IMG/VR virus record: IMGVR_UViG_3300028654_000001
Coordinates: 248,001-312,000 of that record
Reading direction: 5' to 3' (one strand)
Length of the DNA stretch: 64,000 bases
The notes under the pieces are model-generated. The model saw nothing but the letters and a program-made list of their open reading frames with translations, was not told where the DNA came from and made no database searches. The first letter of the stretch is position 1, and the number at the start of each line of letters is the position of its first letter. The position numbers and the translations under genes are program-made. Shown piece by piece: positions 1,558 through 33,715 of the stretch.

Positions 1558-2865
1558 ATGGCATCGGACCTCCACCTAATCCAACGGGTAGCATCAAAGT
1601 GGTCGAGTAAGGATTTTGAGTCAAGGTATGCCCGCCTTCTGCTTTCGATGTCAAGGGATCAAGCCAAAAAGGTCCTTGGTTTCCCTCCAAATGCTAACCC
1701 ATCAGAAAGTGAAATTACCAAGAACTATAGGGAGTTGGCTCTTAGGAACCACCCTGATCGTGGTGGTGATCTTGACACAATGGTGGAGATCAATGTTGCC
1801 AAGGATGTGCTGACCGGAAAGGCTCAGGAACGTTGGCAACCAGAGCCGAGCCCAGAGCGTACTAAATACAAGCCACCCCCACGTCCAGAGGCAGCCTACA
1901 CAGTGAAAGGGGTTCCATTTGCCGCCGCTTGGTCTGGAGCAGGGGTCCCAAGTGGCACTGATTGGAAGTTCGTCAGTGAGCAAGTTAGCTTGTACAGTAA
2001 GGGTTTCCCAACCCAACCTGGTTGTGTACTGTATGGGCAGACAGCAACACTCCATGTTTTCTGTGCAATCTTCAAGCAAGAGTCAACTGATAAGGTATGG
2101 CCCCCTACGGATTCTGATGGGAAGGTCTTTGAGGTTGAAGAAGGGTGGCGAGCTCAAGTTCTGACGGCCCCTATTGCTAAAGATCTAGATAAGATCGCCA
2201 TTAAGTACATCAAACAGATAGTCTCAAACTTCCCAGGTCCGGGCCCCAAAGATGGGAGTGTCCCAAAGAAGTATCTCCTCTATCCTCAAAGTATGGGAAG
2301 TCCAACGGAAGCCTATATCGGGAAGATCCCCTATCGTGGGAAGTTTGCCTTGAAAGAGGTTCTGAGACTTGCTGGTCTTGTTAAAGTTGATGAGGAGAAA
2401 GCTAAAGACACACCGGCTATTATTGAATTCTGGGGTGTCCAAAATAAGCAAAAACTACGAGATAACCCGAGAGGTTACTTGGGTAGTAGCGGTGACTTCT
2501 TCCTATCCATTGATGGCAAAGAGGTTAAACTAGAAGAGGGGACCTGCGAGAAGATCGTCAAGAGTATGTTCTTGGTCTCAGCTCTTCGAAACTTCGAGTA
2601 TCGAAAAGTCTACCGGTTGAATCGCCTGAAGGAGGGTTCTCTCTTCAAAGGCGGAGCTTACTACGCCTTCTTGACTCTTTTCGAGAGCCTCACTGGGGAA
2701 CCTTCTTGGGTAAAGGATGCCTTGGAAAAGAACGTAAGGATCTTCAAGCCTGAAGATCGAACAGCTTCAGTCTTCTTGAACCTCTGCTCTGAGATGTCTT
2801 TGAAGCAAGCTTCAGTTGTTACTGGGATCCCTATGCGTGAGCTAGTAGAGATGGTCTACGACTAA
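1558..2865 (+). CDS. DnaJ (J-domain) containing protein
   Basis: AKKVLGF...ITKNYRELALRNHPDRGGDLDTMVEINVAKDVL contains the HPD motif. I prefer start ATG 1558 (MASDLHLIQRVASKW) to 1465, which overlaps the divergent gene. Confidence 0.75.
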   Translation: MASDLHLIQRVASKWSSKDFESRYARLLLSMSRDQAKKVLGFPPNANPSESEITKNYRELALRNHPDRGGDLDTMVEINVAKDVLTGKAQERWQPEPSPERTKYKPPPRPEAAYTVKGVPFAAAWSGAGVPSGTDWKFVSEQVSLYSKGFPTQPGCVLYGQTATLHVFCAIFKQESTDKVWPPTDSDGKVFEVEEGWRAQVLTAPIAKDLDKIAIKYIKQIVSNFPGPGPKDGSVPKKYLLYPQSMGSPTEAYIGKIPYRGKFALKEVLRLAGLVKVDEEKAKDTPAIIEFWGVQNKQKLRDNPRGYLGSSGDFFLSIDGKEVKLEEGTCEKIVKSMFLVSALRNFEYRKVYRLNRLKEGSLFKGGAYYAFLTLFESLTGEPSWVKDALEKNVRIFKPEDRTASVFLNLCSEMSLKQASVVTGIPMRELVEMVYD

Positions 2866-4538
2866 TCATCCAAGTCAACAGCTACCGGAGCCCCTAAGGC
2901 TGACTTCTCTACCTCAATCAAATCAGGGGGAACTTTCCCTGAAGCTGCAACCATATCAAGCAGCTTCTTGATCATCGGTAAGTCCTGTTGGTAGCTCGCT
3001 GAGTGATTCGGGCTCGGAAGCCTCAGAACCATGTACAGAGATTCTGACAGAGTCAGCTCGAGAGGGTCCTTCTTCAGGATCAGATACGACGCAGGCCCTA
3101 TCCCGTAGATGTCCGGGCCGTATTCCACGACGTTGAGATACATCTCGATGATCTTGTCCTTGGTGAACGAGCTCTCTAGGGCGACCGTTAGGATGGCTTC
3201 TTGGATCTTCCTTCCAATGGTTCGGTTCCTGTTCAGCCACAAGTTCTTCGCCAACTGCATCGTGATGGTGGAGCCGCCGCGGAAGAACCTTCCGAGCTTC
3301 AAGTTGTCCTTCAAGCTGTTCTCGATGGCCTGAGGGATGAAACCCCTGTGGTAGAAGAACGCAGGGTCCTCTGTGGTCGTGAGGGCTGTGGTCATGTTCG
3401 GACTGATCATCTGATAGGGAGTCCAGTCCGGTGCCGATGGTCCAGCTTTACGCGTGAATGGCTTTCCATTTGGATGGTACGCGGTATAGGTGAACTCACC
3501 TGAGAGATCCTTGATGAACTTCGGGGGCGGACCGGTTAGCTTGCAGCCGTTTGAGATCTTGAGTTTCACATCCGGAAGAAGCCTCAAGTCGAACTTGAAG
3601 TCTCCGACTAACCTCACCTGTTTGAGTGGATCGATCAGCATCTCTTCTGGGATAGACTCGAGCCAGTGCTGGCAAGAGTCCACGCCCCAGACATGCTTGC
3701 CTTCCCAGTTGAAGTAGATTGTCGACCACTTACTCTTCACCCAAAGGTTAGGCATCCCAACCAGAGGATTCTTGGGGTCGATAGCTGTGACCTCTACATA
3801 CCTGAAGGTGACTGGCACCGGGTAGAATCTCTTGTGCTCCACCTGGATGGACTTCGCCTTCGGGTAGATCAGGCCATCGGTAAACTCAAGGGCTAGCCCT
3901 TCAATGGTAACCGGTGGGTAGTAGATATTCCCGAGCTCGAGATGCTTGGTTTGAGTATTGAAGGAACCCTCGGTGAACTTGACCTTGTCCAGCTTGAGGA
4001 AGTCACTGATCTTTTGGAAGGCGTCTGGTAGACCAACCCAACCACTGGCAACAGTGGCTACCTTCGACTTGAAGTCGTAGTGCACCCCCTCTACCATAAC
4101 CAGACCGTACTTGGTCTCAATCTTCCCCGTGGCGGCCCGTGCCTCATTCGAATCAAAGGAGGCCTTGTAGAGTTTAGCGGAGTCCAGTCCCCTGTAGAGC
4201 TTCACGGTCAGGTTCTTACCGGTAACCTTGAAACCGGAACCGTTCTTCTGATCCTTTGAGTCAGAGGTTATGTCGACAAGAGCCAGCCCTCCATCAACCG
4301 CAATCGTCTTGGATTTTCTACAGGCAATTGCAGAATCGAAGGTACCCTCGATGTTGTGGATCTTTACGTTAACCCTCTCAAGCCTAACACAATCGAGGTT
4401 GAGTAACTTGACTGACCCAACCTCGACGCCTGGTTTCAACCCGTTGATGTAATGCTTCAGAATTGAAGGAAGAAGCCAGCCAAGTAACAGCAGGGTTACT
4501 GGTATTGAACCGATAATTAGCCATTTCTTACGTAGCAC
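2862..4538 (-). CDS. membrane-anchored peptidoglycan transglycosylase (GT51 family, MtgA/PBP-TG-like)
   Basis: N-terminal TM helix; GT51 motifs EDPAFFYHRG, GGSTITMQLAKNL, RKIQEAILTVALE, KDKIIEMYLN; no transpeptidase domain. Confidence 0.85.
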   Translation of the reverse strand: MLRKKWLIIGSIPVTLLLLGWLLPSILKHYINGLKPGVEVGSVKLLNLDCVRLERVNVKIHNIEGTFDSAIACRKSKTIAVDGGLALVDITSDSKDQKNGSGFKVTGKNLTVKLYRGLDSAKLYKASFDSNEARAATGKIETKYGLVMVEGVHYDFKSKVATVASGWVGLPDAFQKISDFLKLDKVKFTEGSFNTQTKHLELGNIYYPPVTIEGLALEFTDGLIYPKAKSIQVEHKRFYPVPVTFRYVEVTAIDPKNPLVGMPNLWVKSKWSTIYFNWEGKHVWGVDSCQHWLESIPEEMLIDPLKQVRLVGDFKFDLRLLPDVKLKISNGCKLTGPPPKFIKDLSGEFTYTAYHPNGKPFTRKAGPSAPDWTPYQMISPNMTTALTTTEDPAFFYHRGFIPQAIENSLKDNLKLGRFFRGGSTITMQLAKNLWLNRNRTIGRKIQEAILTVALESSFTKDKIIEMYLNVVEYGPDIYGIGPASYLILKKDPLELTLSESLYMVLRLPSPNHSASYQQDLPMIKKLLDMVAASGKVPPDLIEVEKSALGAPVAVDLDD

Positions 4539-4548
4539 CTTGGCACCC

Positions 4549-4555
4549 TACACCA
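4549..4555 (-). promoter_or_regulatory. YGGTGTA motif upstream of the GT51 gene
   Basis: TACACCA on +, 10 nt from GTG 4538. Confidence 0.5.
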
Positions 4556-4566
4556 ACTGGTGGGCT

Positions 4567-5076
4567 TCAGCAAGAAACATATGTACAAAGGTACAGCTTA
4601 ATATCCCGACTTGTATGATCAAGAGCGCAGATGACCTCGAATAGGATTCTCTTGATCTCGTCTAATCGATCTAAATCAACTGAAAATAGGTCATTACCTC
4701 GGTACTCACTGCATTCGTACTCCAACAACCGGTAACCAAGAACGTAGTTTGAGTTACGATCCCAGTCATCTCCGTTCAAAGTTGGGTCCACAATATGGAA
4801 CTGAAGCTTATTAGTAGACCCATCGCTAGTGTTCCACTCGTCAAACAGCTCGTCTGGGGTCTTCTTACCAAACTGTTTTTTGGAGAATTCCATGAAGGCT
4901 GGTTTGAAACTGCGAACCATTTGAGGCTCAAGCTTAGCCCCACACTTGGAGCAGAAAGGACCTCCTTGAGGCGGGTGACCCTTTGGGCACACCACAGCTC
5001 CTGGAAGGGTAATCACCAAGTCATTGGGGCTTAGGGTGGCCCCAATGACCAATCGTGGATAGTAACTTGCTCCCAT
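4567..5076 (-). CDS. hypothetical protein with a small Zn-ribbon (CPKGH...CSKCG)
   Basis: 169-aa ORF packed between neighbouring genes on the same strand. Confidence 0.6.
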   Translation of the reverse strand: MGASYYPRLVIGATLSPNDLVITLPGAVVCPKGHPPQGGPFCSKCGAKLEPQMVRSFKPAFMEFSKKQFGKKTPDELFDEWNTSDGSTNKLQFHIVDPTLNGDDWDRNSNYVLGYRLLEYECSEYRGNDLFSVDLDRLDEIKRILFEVICALDHTSRDIKLYLCTYVSC

Positions 5077-5083
5077 GAAAACC

Positions 5084-7501
5084 TCAGATCTTGATCTCGA
5101 CTTCTCTCATGTCGACTTTGCAGAGGAGATCAGCGCCTCCGAGCTCGAGAGTCATAAAATTCTCATCCAAAGATTTGAACTCTATTGGCCATATTTGCCC
5201 AACTATGATGGCAAATTTGATCTGGGCTATCTCTCGGATCTTCTTGCGGGTGACCGCAACAGCATCCTTGGCCTTCTTGTCGATCCACGCAGTAAAGGCA
5301 GCAAGCTTCTCCTCATCGGAGGGTGGCTTCCCATCCTGTGCATTTGAGACCACAGCCATTGTGTATTCCTTGGAGGCCAGCCACTGCTCGACCTCGGTCA
5401 ACGCAGGTACCAAGAGAGCCCCGCTCGTGGTTTGCTTCTTGGTAGTACCGATCTTCTTCCGAACCTCATTCACGGAAGGGAGCTTGGATAGACCGGCAAT
5501 ACTGACCTCGAGCTTCTTGGCTACATAGAAGTCAATTGCAGCCGCTGAGACTGTGTGAGGGGGTGAAAAGCCAGAATAATCGGTGAACCCTTGCTCCTTC
5601 AACCAATTAGCTATCTCGTCTCCATACGTGGCTACGAACCCTGGTGACTTCTTGGGTGGTATCTTTTCGTCCCTGATGTCTTTATAGACCTTCTGGGCTG
5701 CCCTGGACTTCTCGAGCTCCCACTGAGCCAGGAACAGGGCCTTAGCACTGGCGGCCTTGATCATCCTTCGATTGATTACAGGGAGAGCTCGGAGGTTGAT
5801 GACCCCGATCACGAAACCACCAGCCATCGAAAGCTTGGTTGGCTTGGCTTCAGCAGGGAGCAACTCAGAGAGCTTCTTGGCGGTTGCCTCTGTAACCCTC
5901 ACTGGAAGAGACTCCACGTTGACTAAACCATCCTTAACAATGGCGTAGTTACGGAAGATAAAGGTTTGGAATGACGTCGGAACCTTCCCCTTGAACTCAT
6001 CCTTGAGACGAGCTGAAATGTCGACGGTGCCGGTTTTCCTAACCCCAATCGAGATATTCGGAAAGTCCTCGTTGTAAACCAAGGAAGAGATTGGATAGCC
6101 TTCAGGGGCTGGATCAGCCACGAACTTTAGAGGTGCTGGCTTGGAATTAAGAAGAGTTGTCAGCTCCTCATTCAGCTTCTTGATCTCAGAGGCCTTCTTC
6201 TCTGTACCCAACTTGACCTTGATCTCATCAACTCTAGCTTGCTCGGCAGCAGTGAGGATCTCGTCTGCATCAATTCGACTACGGCCGATCTTTGAGTACT
6301 TGAACTCAGGGTGCTCCAACAGGATATGAGCTGACTCATCACTGGCGAGTAACCCAAGAAGATCGAGAACCGTATAAGCATCGTCATCAGGTACCTTCTT
6401 TGGATCCCAGCCCTTCGTGTAGCGGAGCTTGACATCAAAAGCCGCCGCCTTGGTAGAGTCCATGAAGTCGCTGTATTTTTGCTTTCCAAAACATGACGAA
6501 AACCGATCGACGAAGTCAACATCGGCTAGAGCCTTCAGGAACGGGAAGACTACGTCAGACTTCATGCGAACCGAGTAGAGGGACACGGCCGCATATGCAG
6601 CTGCTAGGGCAACATTATCTGCTTCACAAGTTGGCAATTGTGAGTTGCTTGTATAAGCTGCGGATACCTGACCAAGATCAAGTTTGTAAGTAGTTCCTTC
6701 CTTGTGAGGGCTAACCCTCCAGAACTCGGTTACGTCAGTAGGAAGGTTAGCTTTACCGTCCTCAACGGCGTAGGTTGTCAGTTCCCCATCGATCAGAGTG
6801 TAGACGAAGTTCCCGATGGATCCCCCAGACACCTTGACTTCTATCTTGGGTGCTCCAGAGAGCTTCTTACTCAATGAGGCCTCGAGAGCTGGTTCGTACT
6901 TGGCAAAGTGCTCAGCGAAGATCAGTTGACCTCCGGCCTTTTCTGCCATGGCCGTCAAGAGAGGCCTATCAGCGTAGTAACCATACTCCACGAAGGTTGC
7001 CGCCGATAACCCACCAGCTGCCTCTTCAACGGTACTAAGGATCTCCCCTCTTGGCCAGCAATTATCACACCCATCCGACATGAAGAACAAAGAGAAGATT
7101 GACCCTGACCTCTTGGTACTCACACGCTTGATGAGTGCTGAGACCTCCTGGAGGGGCTCCTTGAACCCGGTTAGCCCAATTGGCTGCAACCACCTGTCGA
7201 TGGCCTTGTTGACGTCCTGCAGGTCAGTGAGGGTCGCTACAGGCTCGGCCTCGAGCAGAGTACCGAACTGCCCTCTACCTGAAAACCAGATGATAGATAC
7301 CGTGTCATTAATCCCAATGAGTTTCGGGAGCTTCCTCTTTAATTGCTCGCGAATCTTCGGAAGTTCGCCATACATGCTGCCTGAAACGTCAATAACCAAT
7401 AGGTGATTGGTTGGTACCTCGACAGGCTTCGCCTTCTCTTTTGTCTTCTTCAACTCTTGGTGAACAAGAAACAGCCCGTCAGCAACCTGGTATGACAGCA
7501 T
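5084..7501 (-). CDS. von Willebrand factor A (VWA) domain protein
   Basis: MIDAS motif LVIDVSGSM, then T...LFFMSDG; about 550 aa of unassigned C-terminal sequence. Confidence 0.8.
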   Translation of the reverse strand: MLSYQVADGLFLVHQELKKTKEKAKPVEVPTNHLLVIDVSGSMYGELPKIREQLKRKLPKLIGINDTVSIIWFSGRGQFGTLLEAEPVATLTDLQDVNKAIDRWLQPIGLTGFKEPLQEVSALIKRVSTKRSGSIFSLFFMSDGCDNCWPRGEILSTVEEAAGGLSAATFVEYGYYADRPLLTAMAEKAGGQLIFAEHFAKYEPALEASLSKKLSGAPKIEVKVSGGSIGNFVYTLIDGELTTYAVEDGKANLPTDVTEFWRVSPHKEGTTYKLDLGQVSAAYTSNSQLPTCEADNVALAAAYAAVSLYSVRMKSDVVFPFLKALADVDFVDRFSSCFGKQKYSDFMDSTKAAAFDVKLRYTKGWDPKKVPDDDAYTVLDLLGLLASDESAHILLEHPEFKYSKIGRSRIDADEILTAAEQARVDEIKVKLGTEKKASEIKKLNEELTTLLNSKPAPLKFVADPAPEGYPISSLVYNEDFPNISIGVRKTGTVDISARLKDEFKGKVPTSFQTFIFRNYAIVKDGLVNVESLPVRVTEATAKKLSELLPAEAKPTKLSMAGGFVIGVINLRALPVINRRMIKAASAKALFLAQWELEKSRAAQKVYKDIRDEKIPPKKSPGFVATYGDEIANWLKEQGFTDYSGFSPPHTVSAAAIDFYVAKKLEVSIAGLSKLPSVNEVRKKIGTTKKQTTSGALLVPALTEVEQWLASKEYTMAVVSNAQDGKPPSDEEKLAAFTAWIDKKAKDAVAVTRKKIREIAQIKFAIIVGQIWPIEFKSLDENFMTLELGGADLLCKVDMREVEIKI

Positions 7502-7533
7502 AGGTGAGGAATCCTTCCGTGGGAATCCCTTAA

Positions 7534-7540
7534 TACACCG
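7534..7540 (-). promoter_or_regulatory. YGGTGTA motif upstream of the VWA gene
   Basis: TACACCG on +, 32 nt from ATG 7501. Confidence 0.45.
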
Positions 7541-7576
7541 ATGGTCACCAGAATCAATGACTTTCTTGTGAACAGA

Positions 7577-8143
7577 TTACAGATCAGATATACTGATCCC
7601 AGTCATTTTTTGAAGCTTCTCAACGACATCAGTCTTTATCTGGCTGATTCTTGGTTCGGATACGTTCAGTTGAGCGGCCAATTCCTTTTGGGTCATACCT
7701 TCGAAGTAGTACTTCAGAATAATCGTCTCTTCGCGCTTGGTAAGCTTCGCCATTTTTGCTATAACTTTTAGGAGAAGCTGTCTAGAAGATACTTGATCCT
7801 CACCCAAGGTTAGATCAACCACGTCATTGTCTAGAACATCCCTAAACTCAGGTTGATTATCGGGTCCTGCCCTGCGCACATACCCGCTCTCTTTGCGGAT
7901 CTCATCAATGATCTGCCCGCGGATCCTCACTCGAGCATAGTAGACGAACTCATCTTCAGAACCCTCGTATCGGTTACAGGCATCCCATAGACCGATCTTA
8001 CCCCAGTGGATCAGTTCCTCAATTTGAAATGGAAATCCAGAACCTCTTAGACTCCATGCAACTTGCTTAGCTAAATAGCTATACTTGTTGAACCTCTTGT
8101 TGAAACCCCTACTGATAGGAGCCTTTTCCTTGTGATTGAACAA
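7577..8143 (-). CDS. sigma-70 family RNA polymerase sigma factor, FliA/WhiG (sigma28)-like
   Basis: Region 2 EELIHWGKIGLWDACNRY...FVYYARVRIRGQIIDEIRK; region 4 HTH LTKREETIILKYYFEGMTQKELAAQLNVSEPRISQI. Confidence 0.85.
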   Translation of the reverse strand: MFNHKEKAPISRGFNKRFNKYSYLAKQVAWSLRGSGFPFQIEELIHWGKIGLWDACNRYEGSEDEFVYYARVRIRGQIIDEIRKESGYVRRAGPDNQPEFRDVLDNDVVDLTLGEDQVSSRQLLLKVIAKMAKLTKREETIILKYYFEGMTQKELAAQLNVSEPRISQIKTDVVEKLQKMTGISISDL

Positions 8144-8164
8144 TTAAGATCCCTATCCTAGAAA

Positions 8165-9607
8165 TCATAACACCTTTTCGAGCAACTCAACTTGGTCCTG
8201 TGGAAGTTCATCCATGCAATAGAAGGCTACCATCTCAGCAAAGTTTTCTTCATCATTCTTACCAGCATATGGAGTTATGAATCCAGATCCTGGTGTTGAT
8301 TCAGGCTTTATACCTTTGAGTGCAGCCCATCCCTTGAGTGAGATACTAGCCTTATACGACGGATCATCCTCTCTATGCATGGTTACCTGGTAACCACTTC
8401 GAGACCCTCCGTATCCAACCCGTTCAACAACATAGGTCTTACCTTTCTCAACCACTGTGTCACCAGGTTTAGGAGAGAGGTCAGGGTTTTTCCTGATCTC
8501 AAACTCGAGGTCACTCGTTGATTGATCTACCTTGGACTTGATAATCTGGTAGATCCTAGCTATGTCTCGGCGCTTACTCTGTAGGAACTTAAATTGAAGC
8601 CGGTGTGCCAACTCATGGAGGATCGTTTGGAGGGCTGCCCCTTCATTACCATTCAGATTGGCTCGTACGAAGAACTCATCACTGGAAACCATGTAGAAGG
8701 CTAGTACCTTGGACTTGGTCAGTGTGTTGGAGATGAGGGCATCTCCATAGCATACTTTTCCAAGACCTTTCTTTGCTAGAAGATGAACAGCCTTCTCAAT
8801 GACCCTGGCACAGTTAGCCATCGTGGCTTCATTAAAACCACCAGTGTTCACAAGTCTAAAGGGACCAGCCTTCAATACGGTAGGAGCATCCACCCCACGC
8901 ACTGTAGCTTTACTAAAGGCATCCTTAGCTATCGCCAAGTGTTCCGTGTATAACTTGAACAACTTCTGGAAGGCTTTGACCCCATCCTCAAAGTTCTTTG
9001 GGCTAGCAAAGCGTGTCTTCTCGTAGAACCTCGAGCAGGCTTCAACCTTCCTTCTAACATCCGCTGGGAGGTCGTATTGCTGAAGAAGACCAAGGAAAAT
9101 GTTCTGAACCCCTATCCTCTGCATGGTACCAAGTGAGGACTTAGGGAAAAGTATGTACTCGTACTTCTTGTTACCAAAGAACCTGGATACCTCTAGCTTC
9201 TTGCCCTCGAAGGGCTCTCCTTCGTGTTGACTCAAGTACTCTTGTGCACTCAAGACATGAGGAAGTTCAATCTCCAAGTCTTCGTATCGATCCAGAGTGG
9301 TTTCCCAAGAACGAATGAGGTTCGGAATATCACCAATGGACATCGCATACCGGCGAGCTACCGAAGCAACGATTGGGCCCCCCTCCTTGCACTTGTTACA
9401 AGTAGTCAACACGGTTACCCGATCCGGACTGGTGCACCGGCACTGCTGGGTAACCGTACCGCAAACTCTGCACACCACCTTGTAGTGCTGCTTAGGGCCT
9501 GGAATGAAGTTACCCTCTGGCGTCCAAGAGCCAGAATCCTCAGAGGCTACTCTAGAGCCACCGGCGCTAGCATACCGCCTGGCGACAGACTGAATGAGAG
9601 AGTCCAC
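8165..9607 (-). CDS. multi-module protein with Zn-ribbon and C-terminal zincin-like metallopeptidase motif
   Basis: Two SVARRYA motifs flank CRVC...CRC...CNKC; LHELAHR (HExxH) plus downstream YAGKNDEENFAE. Confidence 0.6.
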   Translation of the reverse strand: MDSLIQSVARRYASAGGSRVASEDSGSWTPEGNFIPGPKQHYKVVCRVCGTVTQQCRCTSPDRVTVLTTCNKCKEGGPIVASVARRYAMSIGDIPNLIRSWETTLDRYEDLEIELPHVLSAQEYLSQHEGEPFEGKKLEVSRFFGNKKYEYILFPKSSLGTMQRIGVQNIFLGLLQQYDLPADVRRKVEACSRFYEKTRFASPKNFEDGVKAFQKLFKLYTEHLAIAKDAFSKATVRGVDAPTVLKAGPFRLVNTGGFNEATMANCARVIEKAVHLLAKKGLGKVCYGDALISNTLTKSKVLAFYMVSSDEFFVRANLNGNEGAALQTILHELAHRLQFKFLQSKRRDIARIYQIIKSKVDQSTSDLEFEIRKNPDLSPKPGDTVVEKGKTYVVERVGYGGSRSGYQVTMHREDDPSYKASISLKGWAALKGIKPESTPGSGFITPYAGKNDEENFAEMVAFYCMDELPQDQVELLEKVL

Positions 9608-9635
9608 CCTACTGAGGGTTTATCGAATGACTATC

Positions 9636-11191: not shown

Positions 11192-11202
11192 GGTGGTTAG
11201 AA

Positions 11203-25058: not shown

Positions 25059-25067
25059 ACGGCCTAT

Positions 25068-25074: not shown

Positions 25075-25095
25075 ATGGACACACAAACATCAAGC

Positions 25096-26115: not shown

Positions 26116-26221
26116 TCAATACTTACCAATATCGATCCGCTTCTTTTCACCAGTCTCGAGATTAACTACTTGGATCCCAATGATGTCTACTACCCTACGG
26201 AGGATGGGATCACTTAACATC

Positions 26222-26701
26222 CTAGACTATTACCCCTAGGTCCCCCAAGTTCTCAACCACCTGCATCAAGCTATCCACAGCATGTACGTCGTCCGTAATG
26301 AGTTTCCTTAGTTCACGATCGTGAACCTTAGTTTCTATACTCTTGAAGTCGTGTATTATATCGTTTACATCAGCTAGGTCATTGGATACAGCGTCAAGGA
26401 CATCATCCTTCTTACGTCTCCAGGACACCAACTTCTCTTCAACTTCCTCTGGAAGGGCCAAGGCACTCTTGTATCTAGAGGCAACCCTTCGAATGAGTAG
26501 GGCATCTTGAAATTCTTTGAGGGGTTCCATTGTAGCTTCTTTCCCTTTTAGGTATTCACTCTGGGGTTTGTGACAGTGAGGAGAACCTGGATTCTTGTGC
26601 TTACAAAATACGGACCACGCAGTTGCCCAGGCCTGCTCATCAGAGTAGTCTGGGTTATCCTTTTTAATTTTCTCGTGGTATTTGTCAACTGGAGAGGGCA
26701 T
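26222..26701 (-). CDS. two-module hypothetical protein (ChaB-like N-terminus, internal RVASRY)
   Basis: EQAWATAWS; DALLIRRVASRYKSA. Confidence 0.6.
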   Translation of the reverse strand: MPSPVDKYHEKIKKDNPDYSDEQAWATAWSVFCKHKNPGSPHCHKPQSEYLKGKEATMEPLKEFQDALLIRRVASRYKSALALPEEVEEKLVSWRRKKDDVLDAVSNDLADVNDIIHDFKSIETKVHDRELRKLITDDVHAVDSLMQVVENLGDLGVIV

Positions 26702-26705
26702 GTTA

Positions 26706-28049
26706 TCACCTGATGCTTGGTTGTGCCTTCACTCGAGCGGCTACTCTTGAAGCAAGCACTGCATCCTCAAATTCACGAAGTGATTCGGTTGCTGACTTCT
26801 CAGACCCTTCGTTCTTCTTGACGAACCAGATCTCGGACACGTCACTCAAGTTTACCTTAACCGTACCCTCTTCATCATTGGAGGTTGCCTCTTCCGTTGG
26901 CTCTTCCTCAGGGGGCTCCTCTTCCGTTGGTTCTTCCTCGTCAAGATCCTCTTCGGGCTCTTCAGCACCCTCATCAAAAGAGGTAAGAACACTGTCAACA
27001 TCCTCGTCACCAAAGTCCTCAAACTCCTTGGCGACGTTAGCCGTCATGAAGTTACCGAGAACGTCATCAACATCTACCTCAGCACCCTCAGCCGCATAGC
27101 GGTATAGGACCAGAGCCGGGTTTCCAGTAGAAGCCAAATGGCTCATGAACTCCTCAACTCCGTGTCCGATGTGACCGATCTCATCCAGAACATGGAGGTG
27201 ACCCATTGCACGCGACACAGCCTTCATGGCTGTGTGTCTTGCCATCCCTTTGGCAAAGGCCCCAGCGGCTGCAATCGGGCTGCTAGCAGTCAGAGCTGCA
27301 GCTGCAACACCAATGGCTATATGCATGGCAACGGTCTTGACAGCCTTTTTCTGATCCTTGCTCATCTTCTTTCCACTAAGTACAGTCTTGATCCCTTGAC
27401 CGGCTTCTTTGTACTCGTGGACTTCGTGCTTGACGGCCTTTACCACTCCTTTAGTGATCTTCTCTGGAGCTTCAACTAGAGACTTGTGGATCTCATGAAG
27501 GACCTTGCGGCGATGGCTGTCATCCTGAATGAACTGTTGGACTTCCTTAGGGGCATTCTTGACGAAGTCGAGCGCCTTGGCGCCGAGCCCCTTCATCCGT
27601 TCCTTCCAGTTCTTCTTCGGAGACTCCTTATGCTCGTCGGTCTTGGCTTTTGGCTTTTCCTCAGTCGTAGTCTCCTCTGGTTTCTCACCAGTGGGCTTCT
27701 CCTTGGTCTTATCGTCAGTGGGCTTTCCTTTTGACTTATCCTTTTCTTCAGCCTTCTCCACCCAGGCCTGGTAGGCCTTCATGGCCTCCTGATAGAAGTG
27801 CTTGTTCTTCAGAGCTGTGCTGAACGAGACTTGGCGGTGCCGGTCACGAGACAGTGGATTGGGACTCGGGTTCGGAACCATCCTCTTGCCACCCTGTTGG
27901 GTGGTCTCGAGCCACTCACGCCACCGGGGGGGTACACGACCCTTGTTGCTCGAGGAACCCTCTTCCGGATCTTCGCCCTCACTCAGAGCAACTTTCTGAT
28001 AGAGAGCGGCTACTCGAAGAGCCAGCACATGATCAGCTAGGTTAATCAT
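26706..28049 (-). CDS. hypothetical protein with charged low-complexity tracts and two RVAA motifs
   Basis: LALRVAALYQKVA; DAVLASRVAARVKA. Confidence 0.65.
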   Translation of the reverse strand: MINLADHVLALRVAALYQKVALSEGEDPEEGSSSNKGRVPPRWREWLETTQQGGKRMVPNPSPNPLSRDRHRQVSFSTALKNKHFYQEAMKAYQAWVEKAEEKDKSKGKPTDDKTKEKPTGEKPEETTTEEKPKAKTDEHKESPKKNWKERMKGLGAKALDFVKNAPKEVQQFIQDDSHRRKVLHEIHKSLVEAPEKITKGVVKAVKHEVHEYKEAGQGIKTVLSGKKMSKDQKKAVKTVAMHIAIGVAAAALTASSPIAAAGAFAKGMARHTAMKAVSRAMGHLHVLDEIGHIGHGVEEFMSHLASTGNPALVLYRYAAEGAEVDVDDVLGNFMTANVAKEFEDFGDEDVDSVLTSFDEGAEEPEEDLDEEEPTEEEPPEEEPTEEATSNDEEGTVKVNLSDVSEIWFVKKNEGSEKSATESLREFEDAVLASRVAARVKAQPSIR

Positions 28050-28327
28050 ACCTTTTGCAGGTAGTCAGGGTTGCACATGTACATCCTCTGAGTAACCTTC
28101 CCACGAGTTGTAATCTCAGTCACCTGAGCAACTTCAACCCCACGATCACTATAGAGCTTCGTCATGGTACGCTTGGAGTGCATGTACCGCGGTTCTGGCC
28201 AATGAGCTTTCGCTATTGCATCGAGATACTCTTTCTCGGTGCACTCCATCATCCCAGAAGCTGTTTTGGCAGTAGTTTGCTCAGCAAGAACTCTAGCGGC
28301 TACCCTGGCAATGATCTGAAGGCTCAT
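28046..28327 (-). CDS. hypothetical protein with RVAARV leader
   Basis: MSLQIIARVAARVLAEQTTAKTAS. Confidence 0.6.
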   Translation of the reverse strand: MSLQIIARVAARVLAEQTTAKTASGMMECTEKEYLDAIAKAHWPEPRYMHSKRTMTKLYSDRGVEVAQVTEITTRGKVTQRMYMCNPDYLQKV

Positions 28328-28363
28328 GAACGTCTCCTGCTACAGAAGACGTTATCAAAAGAA

Positions 28364-29047
28364 TCAGGTAGCGTTGCCCGTATCTCGAAGCTTATCTAAC
28401 CACTCCTGGATATTATCCAAATCTGTATACAGGAATAGGACACCGTAAAGAGTGCTAGCCCCGTACAGAACATCTGTGAAGAATGAGTTGTTCTGGGCAG
28501 CTTTTTCGATTTTTTGGTATACAATGGCCTCACTACCCAGGTATACCTCGAGATTCCAATCGATACTGAACTCCTCCTCCTCTTTCAGAAGCTTGTCTTG
28601 AAGCACCCCTGCTTCCTTAGCAAGCTGATACATCTTGATCATGCTAGGAAGGTCTTGAACAGCCTCAATAATACCGTGCGATAGCTTAAGTCCCTCAACG
28701 ATCTGTTTCATGAGGGTCTCCCACTCTTTGTCAAGCTTCTTTGCTACGGTAACCCCCTCTTGCAACAGGCTAACTAGTTGCTCAGTATCTTTGATCCTCT
28801 GTTCGATCTTGTCCGCTTCAACCCCAATTGCAGGAGTCTGGAGTGGGCCGACTAAGGATCTGAAGATAGAAGCCAAGTACTTGCACTTCTTTATGTAACC
28901 CCCAGCAGCCTTAACGTCTCGTTTGACCGAATCTCTGGCGTCTTCCCATTCAATAGCCTCCGCATCCCCGAACCAATCAATGGCAGAGGTTACTTGTTGT
29001 TGATAGCGTTTAACAACAGAGGCTATGAGGGTTCTATCGTCAGTCAC
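28364..29047 (-). CDS. hypothetical helical protein with SVVKRY leader
   Basis: MTDDRTLIASVVKRYQQQVTSA. Confidence 0.6.
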   Translation of the reverse strand: MTDDRTLIASVVKRYQQQVTSAIDWFGDAEAIEWEDARDSVKRDVKAAGGYIKKCKYLASIFRSLVGPLQTPAIGVEADKIEQRIKDTEQLVSLLQEGVTVAKKLDKEWETLMKQIVEGLKLSHGIIEAVQDLPSMIKMYQLAKEAGVLQDKLLKEEEEFSIDWNLEVYLGSEAIVYQKIEKAAQNNSFFTDVLYGASTLYGVLFLYTDLDNIQEWLDKLRDTGNAT

Positions 29048-29070
29048 ATAGAACTAACTCAATCAAAAGA

Positions 29071-31446
29071 TCAGGCTTCAGCAGCGGCCGGAGAAATCTC
29101 CCCCCGAGGGGGTATGTCAGCAGGCTCCCGCTCTCGCAAGGTAATCATACAATCCCCACCATTGACGGCTTGTTTCGTTACAACAATCTTTTCAATGTCA
29201 GGGTTGTTTGGAGCTTCATAGGAGATCTTCCTGGTTGCTTTCTCTACAATCGAACGCAGAGCCCTGGCACCCGTTGGCTTCTTCTTAGCCAGAGTGGCGA
29301 TCTCGGTGAGAGCTTCTGGATCAAATTCAAGGTTGATCCCATCCATTCTGAAGAGGGCCTGAACCTGTTGCACTATACTATTCCGTGGTTTCACCAAAAT
29401 CTCGACTAACTGTTCTTCTGTTAGCTCGATAGTACTAGTAATTATAGGAAGGCGTCCCATCATCTCAGGTATGATCCCAAAGTCCAGAACATCTTGCTCT
29501 ATAACCTCAGTATAACCACGGGTTTTATCAACTTTTTCCTTTGCTACAGCCCCAAAACCCATGCTGGAACTCTTGTTCAACCTTCGAGCAACAATCTCAT
29601 CAATGCTAGCAAAGGCACCCGCGCAGATGAAGAGAATGTTCGTAGTATCCACCAAGTCAAAGGTCTGCATCCCGGCGCCAGCCTTACCCATTCCACGAGG
29701 GACTGCCACTGTCGACCCCTCGAGGAGCTTGAGGAGGGCTTGCTGAACACCCTCACCAGATACATCCCGGTACCCAGCTCGGTCACGACCGCTACCCCTG
29801 GCGATCTTGTCTACCTCGTCTAAAAACACGATTCCCCATTGAGCACGCTCCACATCTCCACCCGCATCTAATATGAGACCCTGGATGAGAGTCTCCACAT
29901 CAGCCCCAACATAACCGGCTTGTGTGAGGGTGGTTGCGTCTCCAACATGGAATGGAACGTTCAGCATCCGAGCTAACGTCTCAAAAATATGAGTTTTTCC
30001 AGTGTTATGGGTAACAGTGAAGTCGTCCAGTAGGTAGCGGTGGTCCCCATCTAAAACAAATCCAAAGTATTCCTCAGCCGGCATAGTTCGAGTCTTGAAT
30101 CCAATCCTGAGAACATTTTTACTAGACTGCCTCTCAGCTGCCTTCTTACGAGGTATTCTAGTAGGGACTTCAGAGGTACTTCCGGATATGCACATCCGAT
30201 AGTAAGCCCCTACAAATCCTGTTTGACAACTCTTTGTACAAGGTTGCGGGTAACAAGCAAAACCAAGACTCCTAGTAATGAAGGTTAGGTCCCCCACTAA
30301 GGTTTTCGACTTGTTTACGAAGTCAAAGCAACTGCATTCATCGAGAGAACCATCTGTATCGATTAACCCTGCTAGGATCTCTAACCGATCTTTCCTAGAT
30401 GCTGTTTTGTAACAATGAGGTATGAACTTGTTCTCTCCAGTAACCCTAAGTAAACCTAGGCCCTCTAATGCTTTTGCTATTGGATTCTGAGGCTTACCGC
30501 ATCCTGGCTTGTCTGGGTTGGGGGAGTAACTATCACTCTGGGTCAAGTAATAAGTTGGGCACCGTTCCCCATTAGAATCATTCGGGGATAGGGTTAATCC
30601 AAATTTAGCAGCTTGCCTCTCTAGCTCTGCAAGTATCTCTGGGTCATCTGTAGTCACACCTGGGGTGCCTCCTAATGAACCGTCACCTAGTAGGATACCT
30701 AAGAAGTAAGGGTCAATAGGGAGTTCAGTTGTAGTAGCGGTAAACTCAACTGGTACCCGGAATAACTTGTGAACCGACTTCCTAGTTCTAGACCAAGATA
30801 GCCAATCCATTAGGGCAACGTCAGAAACATCATTAGCAGGGCGGTACCCTGATCCACCATTGTATCCAGTACGAACAAGAGTAAGGATATGACCCTCATT
30901 AACTACCCAGGGCTCGCCCTTAGTTGGAACAATCTCAACCATCCCACTAGTACCCCGATGTAATTCAAGTACATTGCGAGGGGTACTATCTGGACCCATA
31001 AGCTGATCACCCACCTGAACATCCTCTACAGCTTTTAGGGTCCCATCGAACATCAGCACAAGCTGACCTTTTTGGTGGCACCCGCTCGGCCCTAGAAACA
31101 AAATATTGCTTTTCCTAATTTCCACGGGTTTTGACCCGTCAGTCGGTTGCTCAGTAGCCCACTTACGACGTTTGAAGTGGTTGTAGACCACCGTGGAGAT
31201 GTCAATCTTGGCTTGCTCTTGTCCAATCACAAATTCATCCAAGTGAGCTTTGATCTCAAAGGGCTTCTTAAGAGGTTCTTCTTTCTTAGCCTCAAAGCCA
31301 CCCTTTTCAGCACCAGCTTCAAGAGAGGCAGCAGCCTGTACAATACATCGATTGCAGATCGATGGCCCCTTCTCTGGATTTGCTACAACGAGGTTCTTAA
31401 CCTCGTTTCGGGGGCGTCCGCAAAAGTCACAGGTAGTTACTGCCAT
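29071..31446 (-). CDS. clpX: ATP-dependent Clp protease ATP-binding subunit ClpX, containing an intein
   Basis: Zn-binding CDFCG...CNRC; spliced Walker A GPSG|TGKT; AGYVG pore loop; FLDEVDKI; RDVSGEGVQQALLKLLEG; MGF loop; GARALR. Confidence 0.92.
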   Translation of the reverse strand: MAVTTCDFCGRPRNEVKNLVVANPEKGPSICNRCIVQAAASLEAGAEKGGFEAKKEEPLKKPFEIKAHLDEFVIGQEQAKIDISTVVYNHFKRRKWATEQPTDGSKPVEIRKSNILFLGPSGCHQKGQLVLMFDGTLKAVEDVQVGDQLMGPDSTPRNVLELHRGTSGMVEIVPTKGEPWVVNEGHILTLVRTGYNGGSGYRPANDVSDVALMDWLSWSRTRKSVHKLFRVPVEFTATTTELPIDPYFLGILLGDGSLGGTPGVTTDDPEILAELERQAAKFGLTLSPNDSNGERCPTYYLTQSDSYSPNPDKPGCGKPQNPIAKALEGLGLLRVTGENKFIPHCYKTASRKDRLEILAGLIDTDGSLDECSCFDFVNKSKTLVGDLTFITRSLGFACYPQPCTKSCQTGFVGAYYRMCISGSTSEVPTRIPRKKAAERQSSKNVLRIGFKTRTMPAEEYFGFVLDGDHRYLLDDFTVTHNTGKTHIFETLARMLNVPFHVGDATTLTQAGYVGADVETLIQGLILDAGGDVERAQWGIVFLDEVDKIARGSGRDRAGYRDVSGEGVQQALLKLLEGSTVAVPRGMGKAGAGMQTFDLVDTTNILFICAGAFASIDEIVARRLNKSSSMGFGAVAKEKVDKTRGYTEVIEQDVLDFGIIPEMMGRLPIITSTIELTEEQLVEILVKPRNSIVQQVQALFRMDGINLEFDPEALTEIATLAKKKPTGARALRSIVEKATRKISYEAPNNPDIEKIVVTKQAVNGGDCMITLREREPADIPPRGEISPAAAEA
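30004..31080 (-). mobile_element. intein with LAGLIDADG endonuclease (359 aa) in the ClpX Walker A
   Basis: Begins CHQKG, ends THN followed by T; LGILLGDG and LAGLIDTDG. Confidence 0.9.
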
Positions 31447-31459
31447 AGAGGAGGTATAC

Positions 31460-31466
31460 TACACCG
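31460..31466 (-). promoter_or_regulatory. YGGTGTA motif upstream of clpX
   Basis: TACACCG on +, 13 nt from ATG 31446. Confidence 0.55.
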
Positions 31467-31498
31467 ACAGCCTACTAATGCCAAGTAAATCGTGGATT

Positions 31499-33715
31499 CT
31501 AGCCCATCAGCTTCTCAAACCGCTCGACTTTTAAGTGGTCCCATGGGCCGGTTATATTGAAGTGTCCAAGAGCGAATAACTCAGCAAATGACTCACTAGA
31601 ACCTGACATGGACTCGGTCATACTGTACTTGCTAGTCCACCACTCCGGCTTGTCGAAGTCAACGGGTAACTTGTGTAGTTTCTCGTACCGGTGCCCAAGT
31701 TCGTGAATCAAAATGTAGTCTACGCTGCCGTATGTGCCACCAGAACGCTGGAGAATCTTTGGGACAGCCCGAACATAGAGCGTGTCTTCAGATGCGCTAT
31801 ACCTGCCTGAGGATGTACCCCTGAAGTTTTTCGGTGGGGCTAGAGCTACAGTCAGGCCTCCCGAGAGAGCCTTCTTCCTCCATCCTGAAAGGCCACTGAA
31901 CAGGGAGTCTAATCGAGTTGCATACTTGATGAGATTGTCCTCGGACATACCTACCTTGTTGAGGTAGGTGTCAGATCCAATCTTGTACTCTGCTACAAGC
32001 TTGCTACCACCTTCATCAGTGAAATACTGAATGAGCTCATCCATCTTTGGCTTCAAGTCTCGTTCCCATAGAGTCTTGACAACCACTTGAGTCATTTTAT
32101 CGGAATCTGGAGAGAGGTTCCACCCATGCTCGTTTCTGGATTGATTCAAGATCCCCATAAAGCGATCCAAAGAGTCAACCATACCCCGGTGCCCACGGAC
32201 ACTGACTCCAACCTTGAAGTTCTGCTTCATCCAATCAGCCAAGTCATAGGCCTTGGATCTATCATAGGGGCCATGCAGAAGAGATTCAACTCTCTTTTCA
32301 AGATCATCAGCTAAGCCCGCTAAGAAAAGGCGAGCTATTCGAAGTGGGTATATTGCGGCTGACTTGTTGTGTTTGAAGAACTCAACCTGCTTGAGCCGAT
32401 CCTCTGCTTCTTCCTTGGACTTATAGCAACCACCACTCCAATCAGGGTTATTTGGGCTACGAACGCAGTACTGCCCTTTTTCCTTATGGATGACTGCCAG
32501 CACCGATCCTGCAAGCTTCACCTCACCTGGGATAACAATCCTCAACCAGTCCTTTACTTGGTCTAGGACTGTAGCGGAACCGTAGCCAACTAACCTACCG
32601 ATAGCATCACAGAAAGCCTCTTCTGGCTTCTTACCAGCGTACCCTGTGACGGGGTTCTTGGGTACCTTGAGTGTGGTGACCCCAGCATCAAACCCACTCT
32701 GAAAGTCTTCTCGAGTCTCGTAAGCGTGGCTAGATTGATGTCCGTGAGATAGGACGTCCACTTGGAGGGCAAGGACAGGATCCTTGGTCTTCATGTAGTC
32801 GGTGAAGTCCGAACTCCAGGTGAGACGTTCTGGCCACTTGTCAAGAAGCTCCTTTAGATCAAGGGGACCATAGTCCTGACGAATAGCCGTGTCCCAGTAC
32901 TCCTGAGCGGAACCAGAGAGGCCCTTGTACATGTGGTGGGCCATCTCGTGAGCCATCATATGAGCCCCCCACAGCGAGCTTTCCCCTGTCATGGACAACA
33001 TAGAGACCATGATGTGATCCGTTAGGTATTCCCCACCCTGGTCTAATTTACCCTCGAAGTTGATCTCAATCGGAAGTTGGTGATGGATCAACCAAGGGAC
33101 AGTCTTAGAGGCATTGCGCCTGTAGATTCGGAGGGACTCCCTAAACTTGGCGAGAGTCTCCTGTTGCCAATCCTCTTTAGGATCGAACCCGTAGACCTCT
33201 GCTTGGAAACCCTCGATCACCAATCGATCTCGGTTTGGGACTTTGACCTTGATCTCAGAATCCGGAACATTCTCAAGTGCACCCTTGATAGCTTTCCAGA
33301 ACTTCTGTGCTCGGACTTTGACTTTCTTTTCCCAAGGATCCTTATCCATCAGGAATCTTTGGAATCTAGCATCCTTGCCTGCAACTGTAGCAGGAAGGCT
33401 TGGGGCCATCAAGGGAAACGCTAGCTCCAAGTAAAAGTCCCAAGCTGGAGTCCTAAGTTTATCGAAACGGTGATCCCCATTATCCTTGTACTCATTCAGG
33501 AACTGTTCGAACATGAGGAGCTTGAATCTCCCCTTGTACACATCGAAGGCCTCTTTTAGCTCAACGGCCTCATCATAGTCCTTGACCAGAGGTAGGTTCT
33601 TCATCAAGGTGAGGAAGTCCTTGCGCATCTTCTCCACCCAGTTCACATTGATCTGTGAGATACCCGCTACTTTACGGCGGTACCTGTGGGCTACGGTGAG
33701 TACGAGAGGATCCAA
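31499..33715 (-). CDS. multi-module protein with two zincin-like (HExxH) domains
   Basis: AHEMAHH...YAGKKPEEAF and IHELGHR...SKYS...ESFAE; leader TVAHRY; internal LRIARLF. Confidence 0.6.
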   Translation of the reverse strand: MDPLVLTVAHRYRRKVAGISQINVNWVEKMRKDFLTLMKNLPLVKDYDEAVELKEAFDVYKGRFKLLMFEQFLNEYKDNGDHRFDKLRTPAWDFYLELAFPLMAPSLPATVAGKDARFQRFLMDKDPWEKKVKVRAQKFWKAIKGALENVPDSEIKVKVPNRDRLVIEGFQAEVYGFDPKEDWQQETLAKFRESLRIYRRNASKTVPWLIHHQLPIEINFEGKLDQGGEYLTDHIMVSMLSMTGESSLWGAHMMAHEMAHHMYKGLSGSAQEYWDTAIRQDYGPLDLKELLDKWPERLTWSSDFTDYMKTKDPVLALQVDVLSHGHQSSHAYETREDFQSGFDAGVTTLKVPKNPVTGYAGKKPEEAFCDAIGRLVGYGSATVLDQVKDWLRIVIPGEVKLAGSVLAVIHKEKGQYCVRSPNNPDWSGGCYKSKEEAEDRLKQVEFFKHNKSAAIYPLRIARLFLAGLADDLEKRVESLLHGPYDRSKAYDLADWMKQNFKVGVSVRGHRGMVDSLDRFMGILNQSRNEHGWNLSPDSDKMTQVVVKTLWERDLKPKMDELIQYFTDEGGSKLVAEYKIGSDTYLNKVGMSEDNLIKYATRLDSLFSGLSGWRKKALSGGLTVALAPPKNFRGTSSGRYSASEDTLYVRAVPKILQRSGGTYGSVDYILIHELGHRYEKLHKLPVDFDKPEWWTSKYSMTESMSGSSESFAELFALGHFNITGPWDHLKVERFEKLMG

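Follow-up and report, generated by a model that had tools for sequence, protein, structure and literature searches.

What is the short peptide that recurs on unrelated proteins of this huge-phage locus, and what does it do? The window, a 64,000-nucleotide stretch of a 512-kb IMG/VR phage contig, was flagged by an initial annotation because eight otherwise dissimilar proteins carry hh-x-(R/S/T/N)-V-(A/V)-x-(R/K/L)-(Y/F/W/V), in 11 copies, at N-termini or module boundaries and usually followed by an Ala. These copies were proposed to be a lineage-specific capsid-targeting or cleavage signal for packaged and ejected proteins, with internal copies defining polyproteins. We found that the motif is conserved across a clade of huge (300-550 kb) uncultured phages, on the ends of many unrelated proteins encoded beside a phage ClpX unfoldase gene. 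We read it, tentatively, as a portable docking tag that gathers these proteins onto one hub, probably ClpX, although this receptor is inferred from sequence, models and gene linkage.

A recurrent peptide on eight proteins

To determine whether the motif is more frequent than expected, we scanned all six frames of the window with a regular expression, finding exactly 10 strict matches, all at the positions first described, all within long ORFs and none in other frames. Residue shuffles of the 64 window proteins gave 0.18 expected matches (maximum 3 in 300 shuffles). The eleventh, looser copy, PLRIARLF at 32324-32347 (-), is homologous to the N-terminal tags of stand-alone relatives of the C-terminal module of its carrier. 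The observation behind the initial annotation is therefore confirmed. Although the pattern was defined after the copies had been seen, and Arg, Ala and Val are common in genomes of about 50-60% GC, the shuffles preserve composition, and a 9-position PSSM gave 95 hits against 2.2 in shuffles over 392,583 aa of related loci.

We next asked whether the copies could be a nucleotide-level element, such as a promoter or downstream box, or the remnant of an ancestral N-terminal domain. Identity among the copies is 0.57 at codon positions 1+2 and 0.34 at position 3, indicating that selection acts on the peptide, and C-terminal copies exist, arguing against a nucleotide-level element. By all-against-all BLASTP the eight carriers share nothing else, with the exception of a 26-aa flank around the tag in g26222 and the C-terminus of g26706 (proteins are named by their first coordinate), and they have different predicted folds, for example J-domain and zincin, arguing against common ancestry. 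As the tag also changes ends within orthologous families, a non-functional origin of the motif is very unlikely and already contradicted by these results.

The tagged proteins and their neighbors

The first carrier is a J-domain (DnaJ-like) protein at 1558-2865 (+), with the copy LIQRVASKW at 1576-1602 (+). The tag becomes N-terminal if Met32 (base 1558) of the ORF at 1465-2865 is the start, as the public gene call reads it. This protein matches Pfam DnaJ and has an HPD motif at residue 65 of the public gene call, invariant in our alignment. Its AlphaFold (AF2) model matches J-domains by Foldseek (2guz, TM 0.73 by target), with no match in the C-terminal 300 aa.

The second carrier, g8165 (8165-9607, -), is a zincin-like (HExxH) protein built as tag, zinc ribbon, tag and core domain, with LIQSVARRY at the N-terminus (9572-9598, -) and IVASVARRY at the junction before the conserved core (9347-9373, -). 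H331, E332 and H335 are invariant in our alignment. The Pfam Peptidase_Mx1 match is below its cut-off, Foldseek against the PDB gave no significant whole-protein match and only weak matches to Wss1 and M1 catalytic sub-domains, and the atlas leads for the zincin-like modules (M90, Mx1 and ATLF-like) all score below 0.9, so peptidase function is only inferred from the motif. A tblastn search with g8165 found one distant uncultured 485-kb phage (LR745208, 25% identity), with a weak tag-like N-terminus and no ClpX nearby.

The remaining carriers lie together on the minus strand. Protein g25096 (25096-26115), of no known family, has the N-terminal copy IIRNVVARF (26074-26100, -). Protein g26222 (26222-26701) comprises a small Cys/His N-domain, an internal tag at residue 69 (LIRRVASRY, 26471-26497, -) and a helical tail, and the same N-domain is fused to a J-protein in two other proteins (P0145 and P0156). 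Protein g26706 (26706-28049), K/E-rich with one hydrophobic segment, has a tag at each end: LALRVAALY at the N-terminus (27999-28025, -) and LASRVAARV at the C-terminus (26730-26756, -; residue 432 of 447). The 93-aa protein g28046 (28046-28327) has the N-terminal copy IIARVAARV (28289-28315, -), and g28364 (28364-29047), directly downstream of ClpX, has the N-terminal copy LIASVVKRY (29003-29029, -). Finally, g31499 (31499-33715), starting at a TTG codon, is a fusion of two HExxH zincin-like modules, each preceded by a tag: LVLTVAHRY at the N-terminus (33680-33706, -) and the degenerate PLRIARLF at the junction. Six copies in the window start within 10 aa of the ORF start. Searches of Pfam and PHROGs returned nothing for five of the eight carriers.

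Two neighboring genes are untagged. The ClpX unfoldase at 29071-31446 (-) matches Pfam zf-C4_ClpX, AAA_2 and ClpB_D2-small and is interrupted by an intein (Hint and LAGLIDADG) in the Walker A motif. An intein-free orthologue aligns with E. coli ClpX over residues 2-405 and keeps the GYVG pore loop and an LGF (IGF-type) ClpP-docking loop; the window protein has AGYVG and MGF, and the RKH loop is absent. The second gene, at 34387-35148 (-), encodes a nitrilase-like (CN_hydrolase) protein, which is present upstream of ClpX in 35 of 37 clade loci and in none of 43 other phage ClpX loci.

The tag is portable between protein ends and families

To explore the tag in relatives, we examined where it lies within single protein families. 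Among 83 proteins of the J-protein family, scored with a 6-residue core, 50 have N-terminal tags only, 7 C-terminal only and 1 both, while the interior has only 11 hits in 28,328 aa. Orthologues carry one, two or three copies, or carry the tag at the other end, and the g8165 family nearly always starts with it. Fusion proteins keep the tag at the junctions: the C-terminal module of g31499, for example, is a separate gene of ~315-330 aa directly upstream of ClpX in relatives.

The tag is about 14 residues long, D-(P/A)-L-h-x-(R/N/S)-V-(A/V)-x-R-(Y/F)-x-x-(A/S), and reads as an N-capped amphipathic helix. AF2 models it as a helix with lower confidence than the cores: in g8165 the tags have pLDDT 42-55 beside a core above 90 and are weakly packed, whereas in the J-protein the tag is the N-terminal end of a long helix with pLDDT 68-76, so that it is clearly unpacked only in the zincin model. 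The helical hydrophobic moment averages 0.50 against 0.29 for random 12-mers and is consistently high at 100 degrees but not at 170 degrees. The Ala following the motif is real but is part of the motif itself: in 88 unique tags, position +3 after the aromatic is A or S in 56%, and 87% have an Ala within 10 aa against 51% of random 10-mers. Positions +7 to +10 are somewhat enriched in P, D and E, which we read as a linker. Together with the swapping of ends within families, these features indicate a flexible terminal tail independent of the fold of its carrier.

Tags cluster around a clade-specific ClpX gene

We then mapped the tags relative to ClpX. In 32 non-redundant clade loci, all 54 tags lie on the ClpX strand; 52 lie between -2.5 and +7.5 kb of the ClpX start, and none between -10 and -5 kb. 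In one relative (L033), almost every gene called in the block carries a tag or a weaker tag-like N-terminus, except ClpX and the nitrilase-like protein, which are never tagged. By contrast, we found no tags in 40 loci with more distant phage ClpX and only 2 marginal hits in 38 bacterial ClpX loci. Zero counts in three relatives of 64-69% GC (L070, L073 and L083) are uninformative, as our simple ORF caller fails there. The linkage is not absolute, because tagged genes also occur 20-170 kb from ClpX, in this window (1558-9607) and in one other locus (L006), and conserved gene order could partly reflect a conserved core genome rather than function. These results cover only about 72 kb of the 512-kb genome.

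The neighbors of the block are nucleotide-metabolism and replication genes. The recognizable ones are DHFR and DUF1848 in relatives, and in the window ThyX and replication genes lie further along. The initial annotation had set equal frequency in metabolic proteins as a refutation of its idea, and this was not observed, with no tags in the ~30 kb of replication genes in the window or in the NAD and nucleotide genes to its left.

Evidence bearing on packaging or cleavage

The proposed interpretation is partly supported. The motif is a lineage-specific, portable peptide code at termini and module boundaries, and internal copies do mark junctions of modules that are separate genes elsewhere, but we found no support for capsid targeting, ejection or protease cleavage. 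No structural gene was recognized among the annotated genes of the window (most ORFs in the related loci were left unannotated), and no tagged protein hits a PHROG virion category. The T4 capsid-targeting sequence and phiKZ-type prohead-protease signals are likewise short, lineage-specific N-terminal peptides on unrelated phage proteins, but they are N-terminal only, are removed at a defined protease site and sit on virion proteins. Here, C-terminal, internal and tandem copies exist, which does not fit a removed N-terminal propeptide, and no conserved cleavage-type consensus follows the tag, the A/S at +3 fitting helix periodicity. A J-domain co-chaperone would also be an odd capsid cargo. In favor of packaging, the tags lie at termini and junctions, encapsulin-type and T4-type targeting peptides are similarly short, several tagged modules are HExxH peptidase-like and could process themselves, ClpX and ClpP were detected in phage G particles (PMC12484599), and jumbo-phage AAA+ chaperones, including ClpX, have been speculated to help virion assembly or move proteins into heads (PMC7824862). 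A megablast search of the cluster against GenBank phages found nothing, and tblastn with ClpX found no cultured phage above 50% identity in the phage collection from which virion proteomics could be borrowed. We consider a packaging or processing signal unlikely.

Equally unlikely is that the tag is a leader or junction peptide cut or bound by the zincin-like proteins of the module. Three zincin-like module families are each preceded by a tag and shuffled as tag-zincin cassettes, and fusions in two related loci (L009 7949-11182 and L004 5687-8356) look like polyproteins. However, the zincin's own tags are not packed on its modelled core, many tagged proteins are small single-module proteins with nothing to release, and C-terminal tags lie a few residues from the stop codon.

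ClpX as the inferred receptor

Our preferred, though tentative, explanation is that the tag marks the proteins of a proteostasis module specific to this clade, comprising a ClpX unfoldase, a J-domain co-chaperone, several HExxH zincin-like modules and a few proteins of unknown fold. In this view, the tag would tether them to the phage ClpX hexamer, probably through its N-terminal zinc-binding domain, to act as adaptors, co-factors or timed substrates, resembling how SspB-type XB tails tether adaptors to bacterial ClpX. Our analysis establishes the motif, selection on the peptide, its portability between ends and families, its predicted helical and peripheral nature, its tight linkage to the clade-specific ClpX gene, and the untagged state of this ClpX, which keeps a zinc N-domain, a pore loop and a ClpP-docking loop; binding to ClpX, the N-domain as the binding site and what docking achieves are inferences.

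The zinc domain is a docking platform for adaptors and substrates, with three dimers per hexamer, and binds a short basic-hydrophobic consensus (LKxh, like the SspB tail) (PMC7226468, PMC7804408). RssB, trigger factor and the substrate lambda O also bind this domain. The clade ClpX keeps the C4 zinc domain with an invariant Phe at the position of E. coli F16, although under a gapless alignment the residue equivalent to I46 is not hydrophobic while the next residue is. Two or three tags per protein would fit a multivalent receptor. Like the XB (ClpX-binding) tail of SspB-type adaptors, the tag is a short basic-hydrophobic peptide on a flexible tail, shared by otherwise unrelated partners and present in more than one copy, but it is longer, ends in a conserved aromatic residue, is mostly N-terminal, and its carriers are encoded next to ClpX. 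The sequence match to LRVVK / LKxh is only partial: an R-V-(A/V) core is shared and some copies read L-R-V-A or L-R-V-V (LALRVAALY here, LALRVVARY in the protein P0024), but in most the Leu is not adjacent to the Arg, and a conserved R-(Y/F) follows. The XB tail reportedly binds as an extended strand in the 2007 ZBD-XB crystal structure, whereas our tag is predicted to be helical, which counts against the analogy.

A different hub is possible but less likely. The nitrilase-like protein is just as conserved, adjacent and untagged, so that phyletic pattern cannot separate it from ClpX as the receptor, and enzymes of this superfamily form large oligomers; however, peptide docking on nitrilase-superfamily proteins is not known to have a precedent. 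The receptor could also be a host factor such as DnaK or host ClpX/ClpP, as the module contains a J-protein that should recruit host Hsp70, but the J-protein itself carries the tag, which argues against a simple DnaK client site. Alternatively, tags could bind one another to assemble the module proteins into one complex. The small residue at the center of the hydrophobic face could pack against many kinds of groove, but nine to fourteen residues is short for stable self-association, and strict conservation of V, A, R and Y/F suggests one specific receptor.

Functionally, the logic most closely parallels p97/VCP cofactor motifs such as VIM (RX5AAX2R), VBM and the SHP box, in which short Arg/Ala-rich helical motifs let many unrelated cofactors dock on the N-domain of one AAA+ unfoldase, although that system is eukaryotic, with an unrelated N-domain fold and no sequence relation. 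Encapsulation peptides of bacterial microcompartments and cargo-loading peptides of encapsulins are amphipathic helices of about 10-18 residues, set off by a linker at either terminus or between domains of unrelated cargo encoded beside the receptor gene. The tag shares the either-terminus placement and, as predicted, the helix and linker, but no shell or HK97-fold gene was recognized in the block, although most of its genes have no known fold; its conserved untagged genes are ClpX and the nitrilase-like protein. SPO1 gp53, an adaptor-like protein reported to re-programme host ClpCP (PMC6873191), provides a precedent for phage proteins docking on a Clp unfoldase to redirect proteolysis, but is a single protein acting on host ClpC, with no shared tag and no phage-encoded unfoldase.

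A more speculative and unlikely possibility is that the tag is the assembly code of a modular, phage-built unfoldase machine. One ClpX hexamer would recruit, through its three N-domain dimers, interchangeable tagged cofactors: several HExxH peptidases, a J-protein bringing in host Hsp70, and scaffold-like proteins tagged at both ends. A second, interchangeable tag (Y-x-Y-D-R-R) would address a second site. Such a machine, like the p97 cofactor system or an FtsH assembled in trans, would remodel or destroy host proteins or mature phage proteins; more remotely, ClpX could use the tag to thread these proteins into procapsids.

Huge phages carry hundreds of genes of unknown function, and this tag groups about ten of them per genome into one physical or regulatory module. 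Even if the receptor is something else, the tag is a practical handle on the hub. If it binds the phage ClpX, this would be, as far as our literature searches show, the first described set of adaptors or cofactors for a virus-encoded Clp unfoldase, would yield a small, transferable targeting tag, and would represent a bacterial-virus counterpart of motif-based cofactor recruitment in AAA+ machines.

Genomic setting and recurrence of the motif

The 64-kb window belongs to IMGVR_UViG_3300028654_000001, a viral contig of 512,571 bp, and encodes a family-A DNA polymerase, a DnaB-like helicase, an SNF2 helicase and an AAA protein, several of them split by inteins, together with ThyX, a TnpB-like protein, a sigma-70-type factor, a vWA protein, a transglycosylase, an RlaP-like nucleotidyltransferase, a CN_hydrolase and a ClpX with its C4 zinc N-domain and an intein. 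In total, inteins or homing-endonuclease domains interrupt five genes in 64 kb (29071-31446, 47843-52093, 55557-58655, 43481-46426 and 19973-21817, all on the minus strand): ClpX, inside the Walker A motif, DNA polymerase A, the SNF2 helicase, an AAA ATPase and a DUF1848 protein. The TnpB/Cas12f-like transposon protein (37339-38967, minus strand; PHROG transposase, Cas12f1-like TNB domain) sits between the ClpX block and the ThyX and replication genes. We found no nucleotide match among GenBank phages, and no cultured phage in the collection searched has a ClpX more than 50% identical to that of this clade. The nearest cellular ClpX N-domains (loci L142-L179) are at most 49% identical and come mostly from freshwater Bacteroidota (Crocinitomix, Aquirufa, Cytophagaceae), a weak hint about the host range of the clade.

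To determine whether the short motif reported in the initial annotation, hh-x-(R/S/T/N)-V-(A/V)-x-(R/K/L)-(Y/F/W/V), is real, we scanned all six frames and found exactly ten strict matches, all within the long ORFs named in that annotation and none in other frames, so the observation holds. Shuffling residues within the 64 window proteins gave a mean of 0.18 matches, and never more than 3 in 300 trials. Six copies begin within ten residues of the ORF start. Public gene calls disagree with the ORF starts at two carriers: the J-domain protein encoded by ORF 1465-2865 (plus strand) is called from Met32 (base 1558), leaving out 1465-1557 and making its tag N-terminal, whereas the Atlas record of g31499 (window genes are named by their lowest coordinate; g31499 is a fusion of two HExxH zincin-like modules) starts at residue 30 and so omits the tag (33628-33715, minus strand); for the latter we take the TTG start, which has GGGGTG upstream. 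The looser eleventh copy, PLRIARLF at 32324-32347, is a degenerate homologue of the N-terminal tags carried by stand-alone relatives of the C-terminal half of g31499. The carriers are otherwise unrelated by BLASTP, with the single exception of a 26-residue flank shared by the tagged protein g26222 and the C-terminus of g26706. The latter (26706-28049, minus strand) is a K/E-rich, low-complexity protein with one Ala/Gly-rich hydrophobic segment and a tag at each end, a layout that would suit a cross-linker or scaffold. Arg and Val codons differ among copies (identity 0.57 at codon positions 1 and 2, 0.34 at position 3), so the peptide is what is conserved.

The tag is predicted to be a peripheral helix

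Pooling 88 unique instances from the window and its relatives, we obtained the consensus D-(P/A)-L-h-x-(R/N/S)-V-(A/V)-x-R-(Y/F)-x-x-(A/S), followed from about +7 by a stretch somewhat enriched in P, D and E. The initial annotation had noted an Ala within about 10 aa of the motif, and this is real (87%, against 51% of random 10-mers), but the Ala is concentrated at +3, where it continues the helical face, and no protease-type consensus follows. The helical hydrophobic moment averages 0.50, against 0.29 (sd 0.15) for random 12-mers of the window, while the strand moment is not consistently high. AlphaFold2 with deep alignments models the tags as helices: in g8165, a zincin-like protein, both copies have pLDDT 42-55 beside a core above 90, and in the J-protein the tag is the N-terminal end of a long helix, with pLDDT 68-76. 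In these models the tag is thus a helical element at the edge of its carrier, clearly outside the folded core in the zincin and continuing a longer N-terminal helix in the J-protein. Between the two tags of g8165 (9374-9571, minus strand) lies a C4 zinc-ribbon-like segment (CxxC...CxxC) that AlphaFold2 models as three strands with moderate confidence.

The tag is conserved and portable across a clade of huge phages

Homologues of g8165 (185 proteins) come largely from contigs of 150-550 kb and nearly always begin M-D-P-L-A-x-R-V-A-x-R-(Y/F), sometimes twice in tandem; one HAD-fusion homologue (P0048) keeps the tag at the junction. In the J-protein family (83 proteins), a 6-residue core score identified 50 proteins with an N-terminal tag only, 7 with a C-terminal tag only and 1 with both, whereas the interior has 11 hits in 28,328 aa. 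Orthologous J-proteins carry one tag (the window), two (related locus L037), three (L008), or none at the N-terminus but one at the C-terminus (L033). Tag+zincin cassettes are also shuffled between close relatives: L004, an 82%-identical relative, has an extra HExxH module of about 400 aa between the two tags of the g8165 orthologue (L004 5687-8356), and L009 carries a three-module fusion of a module like the N-terminal one of g31499, two tags and a g8165-like module (L009 7949-11182). A 9-position PSSM at 13 bits gave 95 hits over 392,583 aa, against 2.2 in shuffles.

We also observed a second terminal motif, Y-x-Y-D-R-R, at the N- or C-end of 80-110 aa proteins next to ClpX, and on some g8165-like and J-like proteins it replaces the RVAxRY tag. 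Instances are found in related loci at L020 13339-13671, L062 from 9608, L065 12647-12889, L080 from 9701, L029 9779-10930 and L030 8406-9665, and in proteins P0071, P0075, P0078, P0080-82, P0085, P0092, P0101 and P0198. Both motifs can occur in one genome (L020, and the contig of L030/L040).

Tagged genes cluster around a clade-specific ClpX

The tagged families are split into two groups in this window, but in relatives they sit in one co-directional block. In L033 the order is nitrilase-like, small tagged protein, zincin like the C-terminal module of g31499, ClpX, g8165-like zincin, J-protein, g26706-like, g26222-like, g25096-like (g25096 being a further tagged protein of the window). To explore this linkage in greater depth, we retrieved loci around clade-type ClpX N-domains. 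In 32 non-redundant loci we found 54 tags, all on the ClpX strand, of which 52 lie between -2.5 and +7.5 kb of the ClpX start and none between -10 and -5 kb. ClpX (25 loci) and the nitrilase-like protein (24 loci) are never tagged, whereas the family downstream of ClpX is tagged in 31 of 39 members. By contrast, there is not one hit in 40 loci with more distant phage ClpX genes, and 38 bacterial ClpX loci give 2 marginal hits in 413,000 aa of open frames. Some tagged genes do lie far from ClpX.

The initial annotation had proposed a signal for capsid targeting or cleavage. The genomic context points to ClpX, not to the capsid. The neighbours recognised around the block are DHFR and DUF1848 in relatives; in this window they are ThyX and replication genes, and the contig sequence to the left (locus L141, 1-8400) holds a cluster of NAD-salvage and nucleotide genes: NAMPT, NUDIX, adenylosuccinate synthetase, a CTP_transf-like protein, a DNMK-like kinase and a nucleoside deoxyribosyltransferase. 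None of these neighbours carries a tag, and no tagged protein hits a PHROG virion category. These observations cover only about 72 kb of the genome, however, so tags on structural proteins elsewhere are not excluded, and because ClpX and ClpP were found in particles of phage G, an unrelated megaphage (PMC12484599), a link to virion assembly remains possible.

ClpX as the favoured candidate receptor

The clade ClpX (29071-31446, minus strand, in the window) keeps the C4 zinc domain, with an invariant Phe at the position of E. coli F16, as well as the GYVG pore loop and an LGF/MGF loop equivalent to the ClpP-docking IGF loop. In bacteria, the zinc domain is the established docking site for adaptors and substrates (SspB, RssB, trigger factor, lambda O), with three dimers per hexamer and a short consensus, LKxh, close to the SspB tail (PMC7226468, PMC7804408). 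The tag shares an R-V-(A/V) core with that consensus, sits on tails, and often occurs two or three times per protein, which suits a trivalent receptor. The match to the consensus is only partial, however, and the tag looks helical, whereas the SspB tail reportedly binds as a strand. The cargo makes sense around an unfoldase: a J-domain co-chaperone with an invariant HPD and three families of HExxH zincin-like modules. Phage proteins that dock on host Clp unfoldases are known (PMC6873191), and ClpX and DnaJ genes have been noted in jumbo phages without a proposed partner code (PMC7824862); our literature searches found no description of this motif.

The other untagged candidate is the nitrilase-like (CN_hydrolase) protein (34387-35148, minus strand, in the window; loci L061-L100). 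Its gene lies 0.1-2.5 kb upstream of the clade ClpX in 35 of 37 loci and is absent from 43 other phage ClpX loci, so phyletic patterns do not separate the two. The N-terminal amidase of the N-degron pathway belongs to the same superfamily. The recurrence, conservation and portability of the tag and its linkage to the clade ClpX are direct results of this analysis, whereas binding to ClpX is inferred, and we regard ClpX as a tentative assignment, favoured but somewhat less likely than not to be the receptor. We consider it highly likely that the tag is a docking or sorting peptide of some kind.

Together, these results confirm and extend the original observation: the motif is a clade-wide, portable terminal element, predicted to be helical. 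The interpretation first attached to it is partly supported, in that the general idea of a lineage-specific address code is right, while the specific reading as capsid targeting or cleavage is unsupported and in part contradicted. The best-supported explanation is a docking tag of a ClpX-centred proteostasis module in this clade of huge phages.
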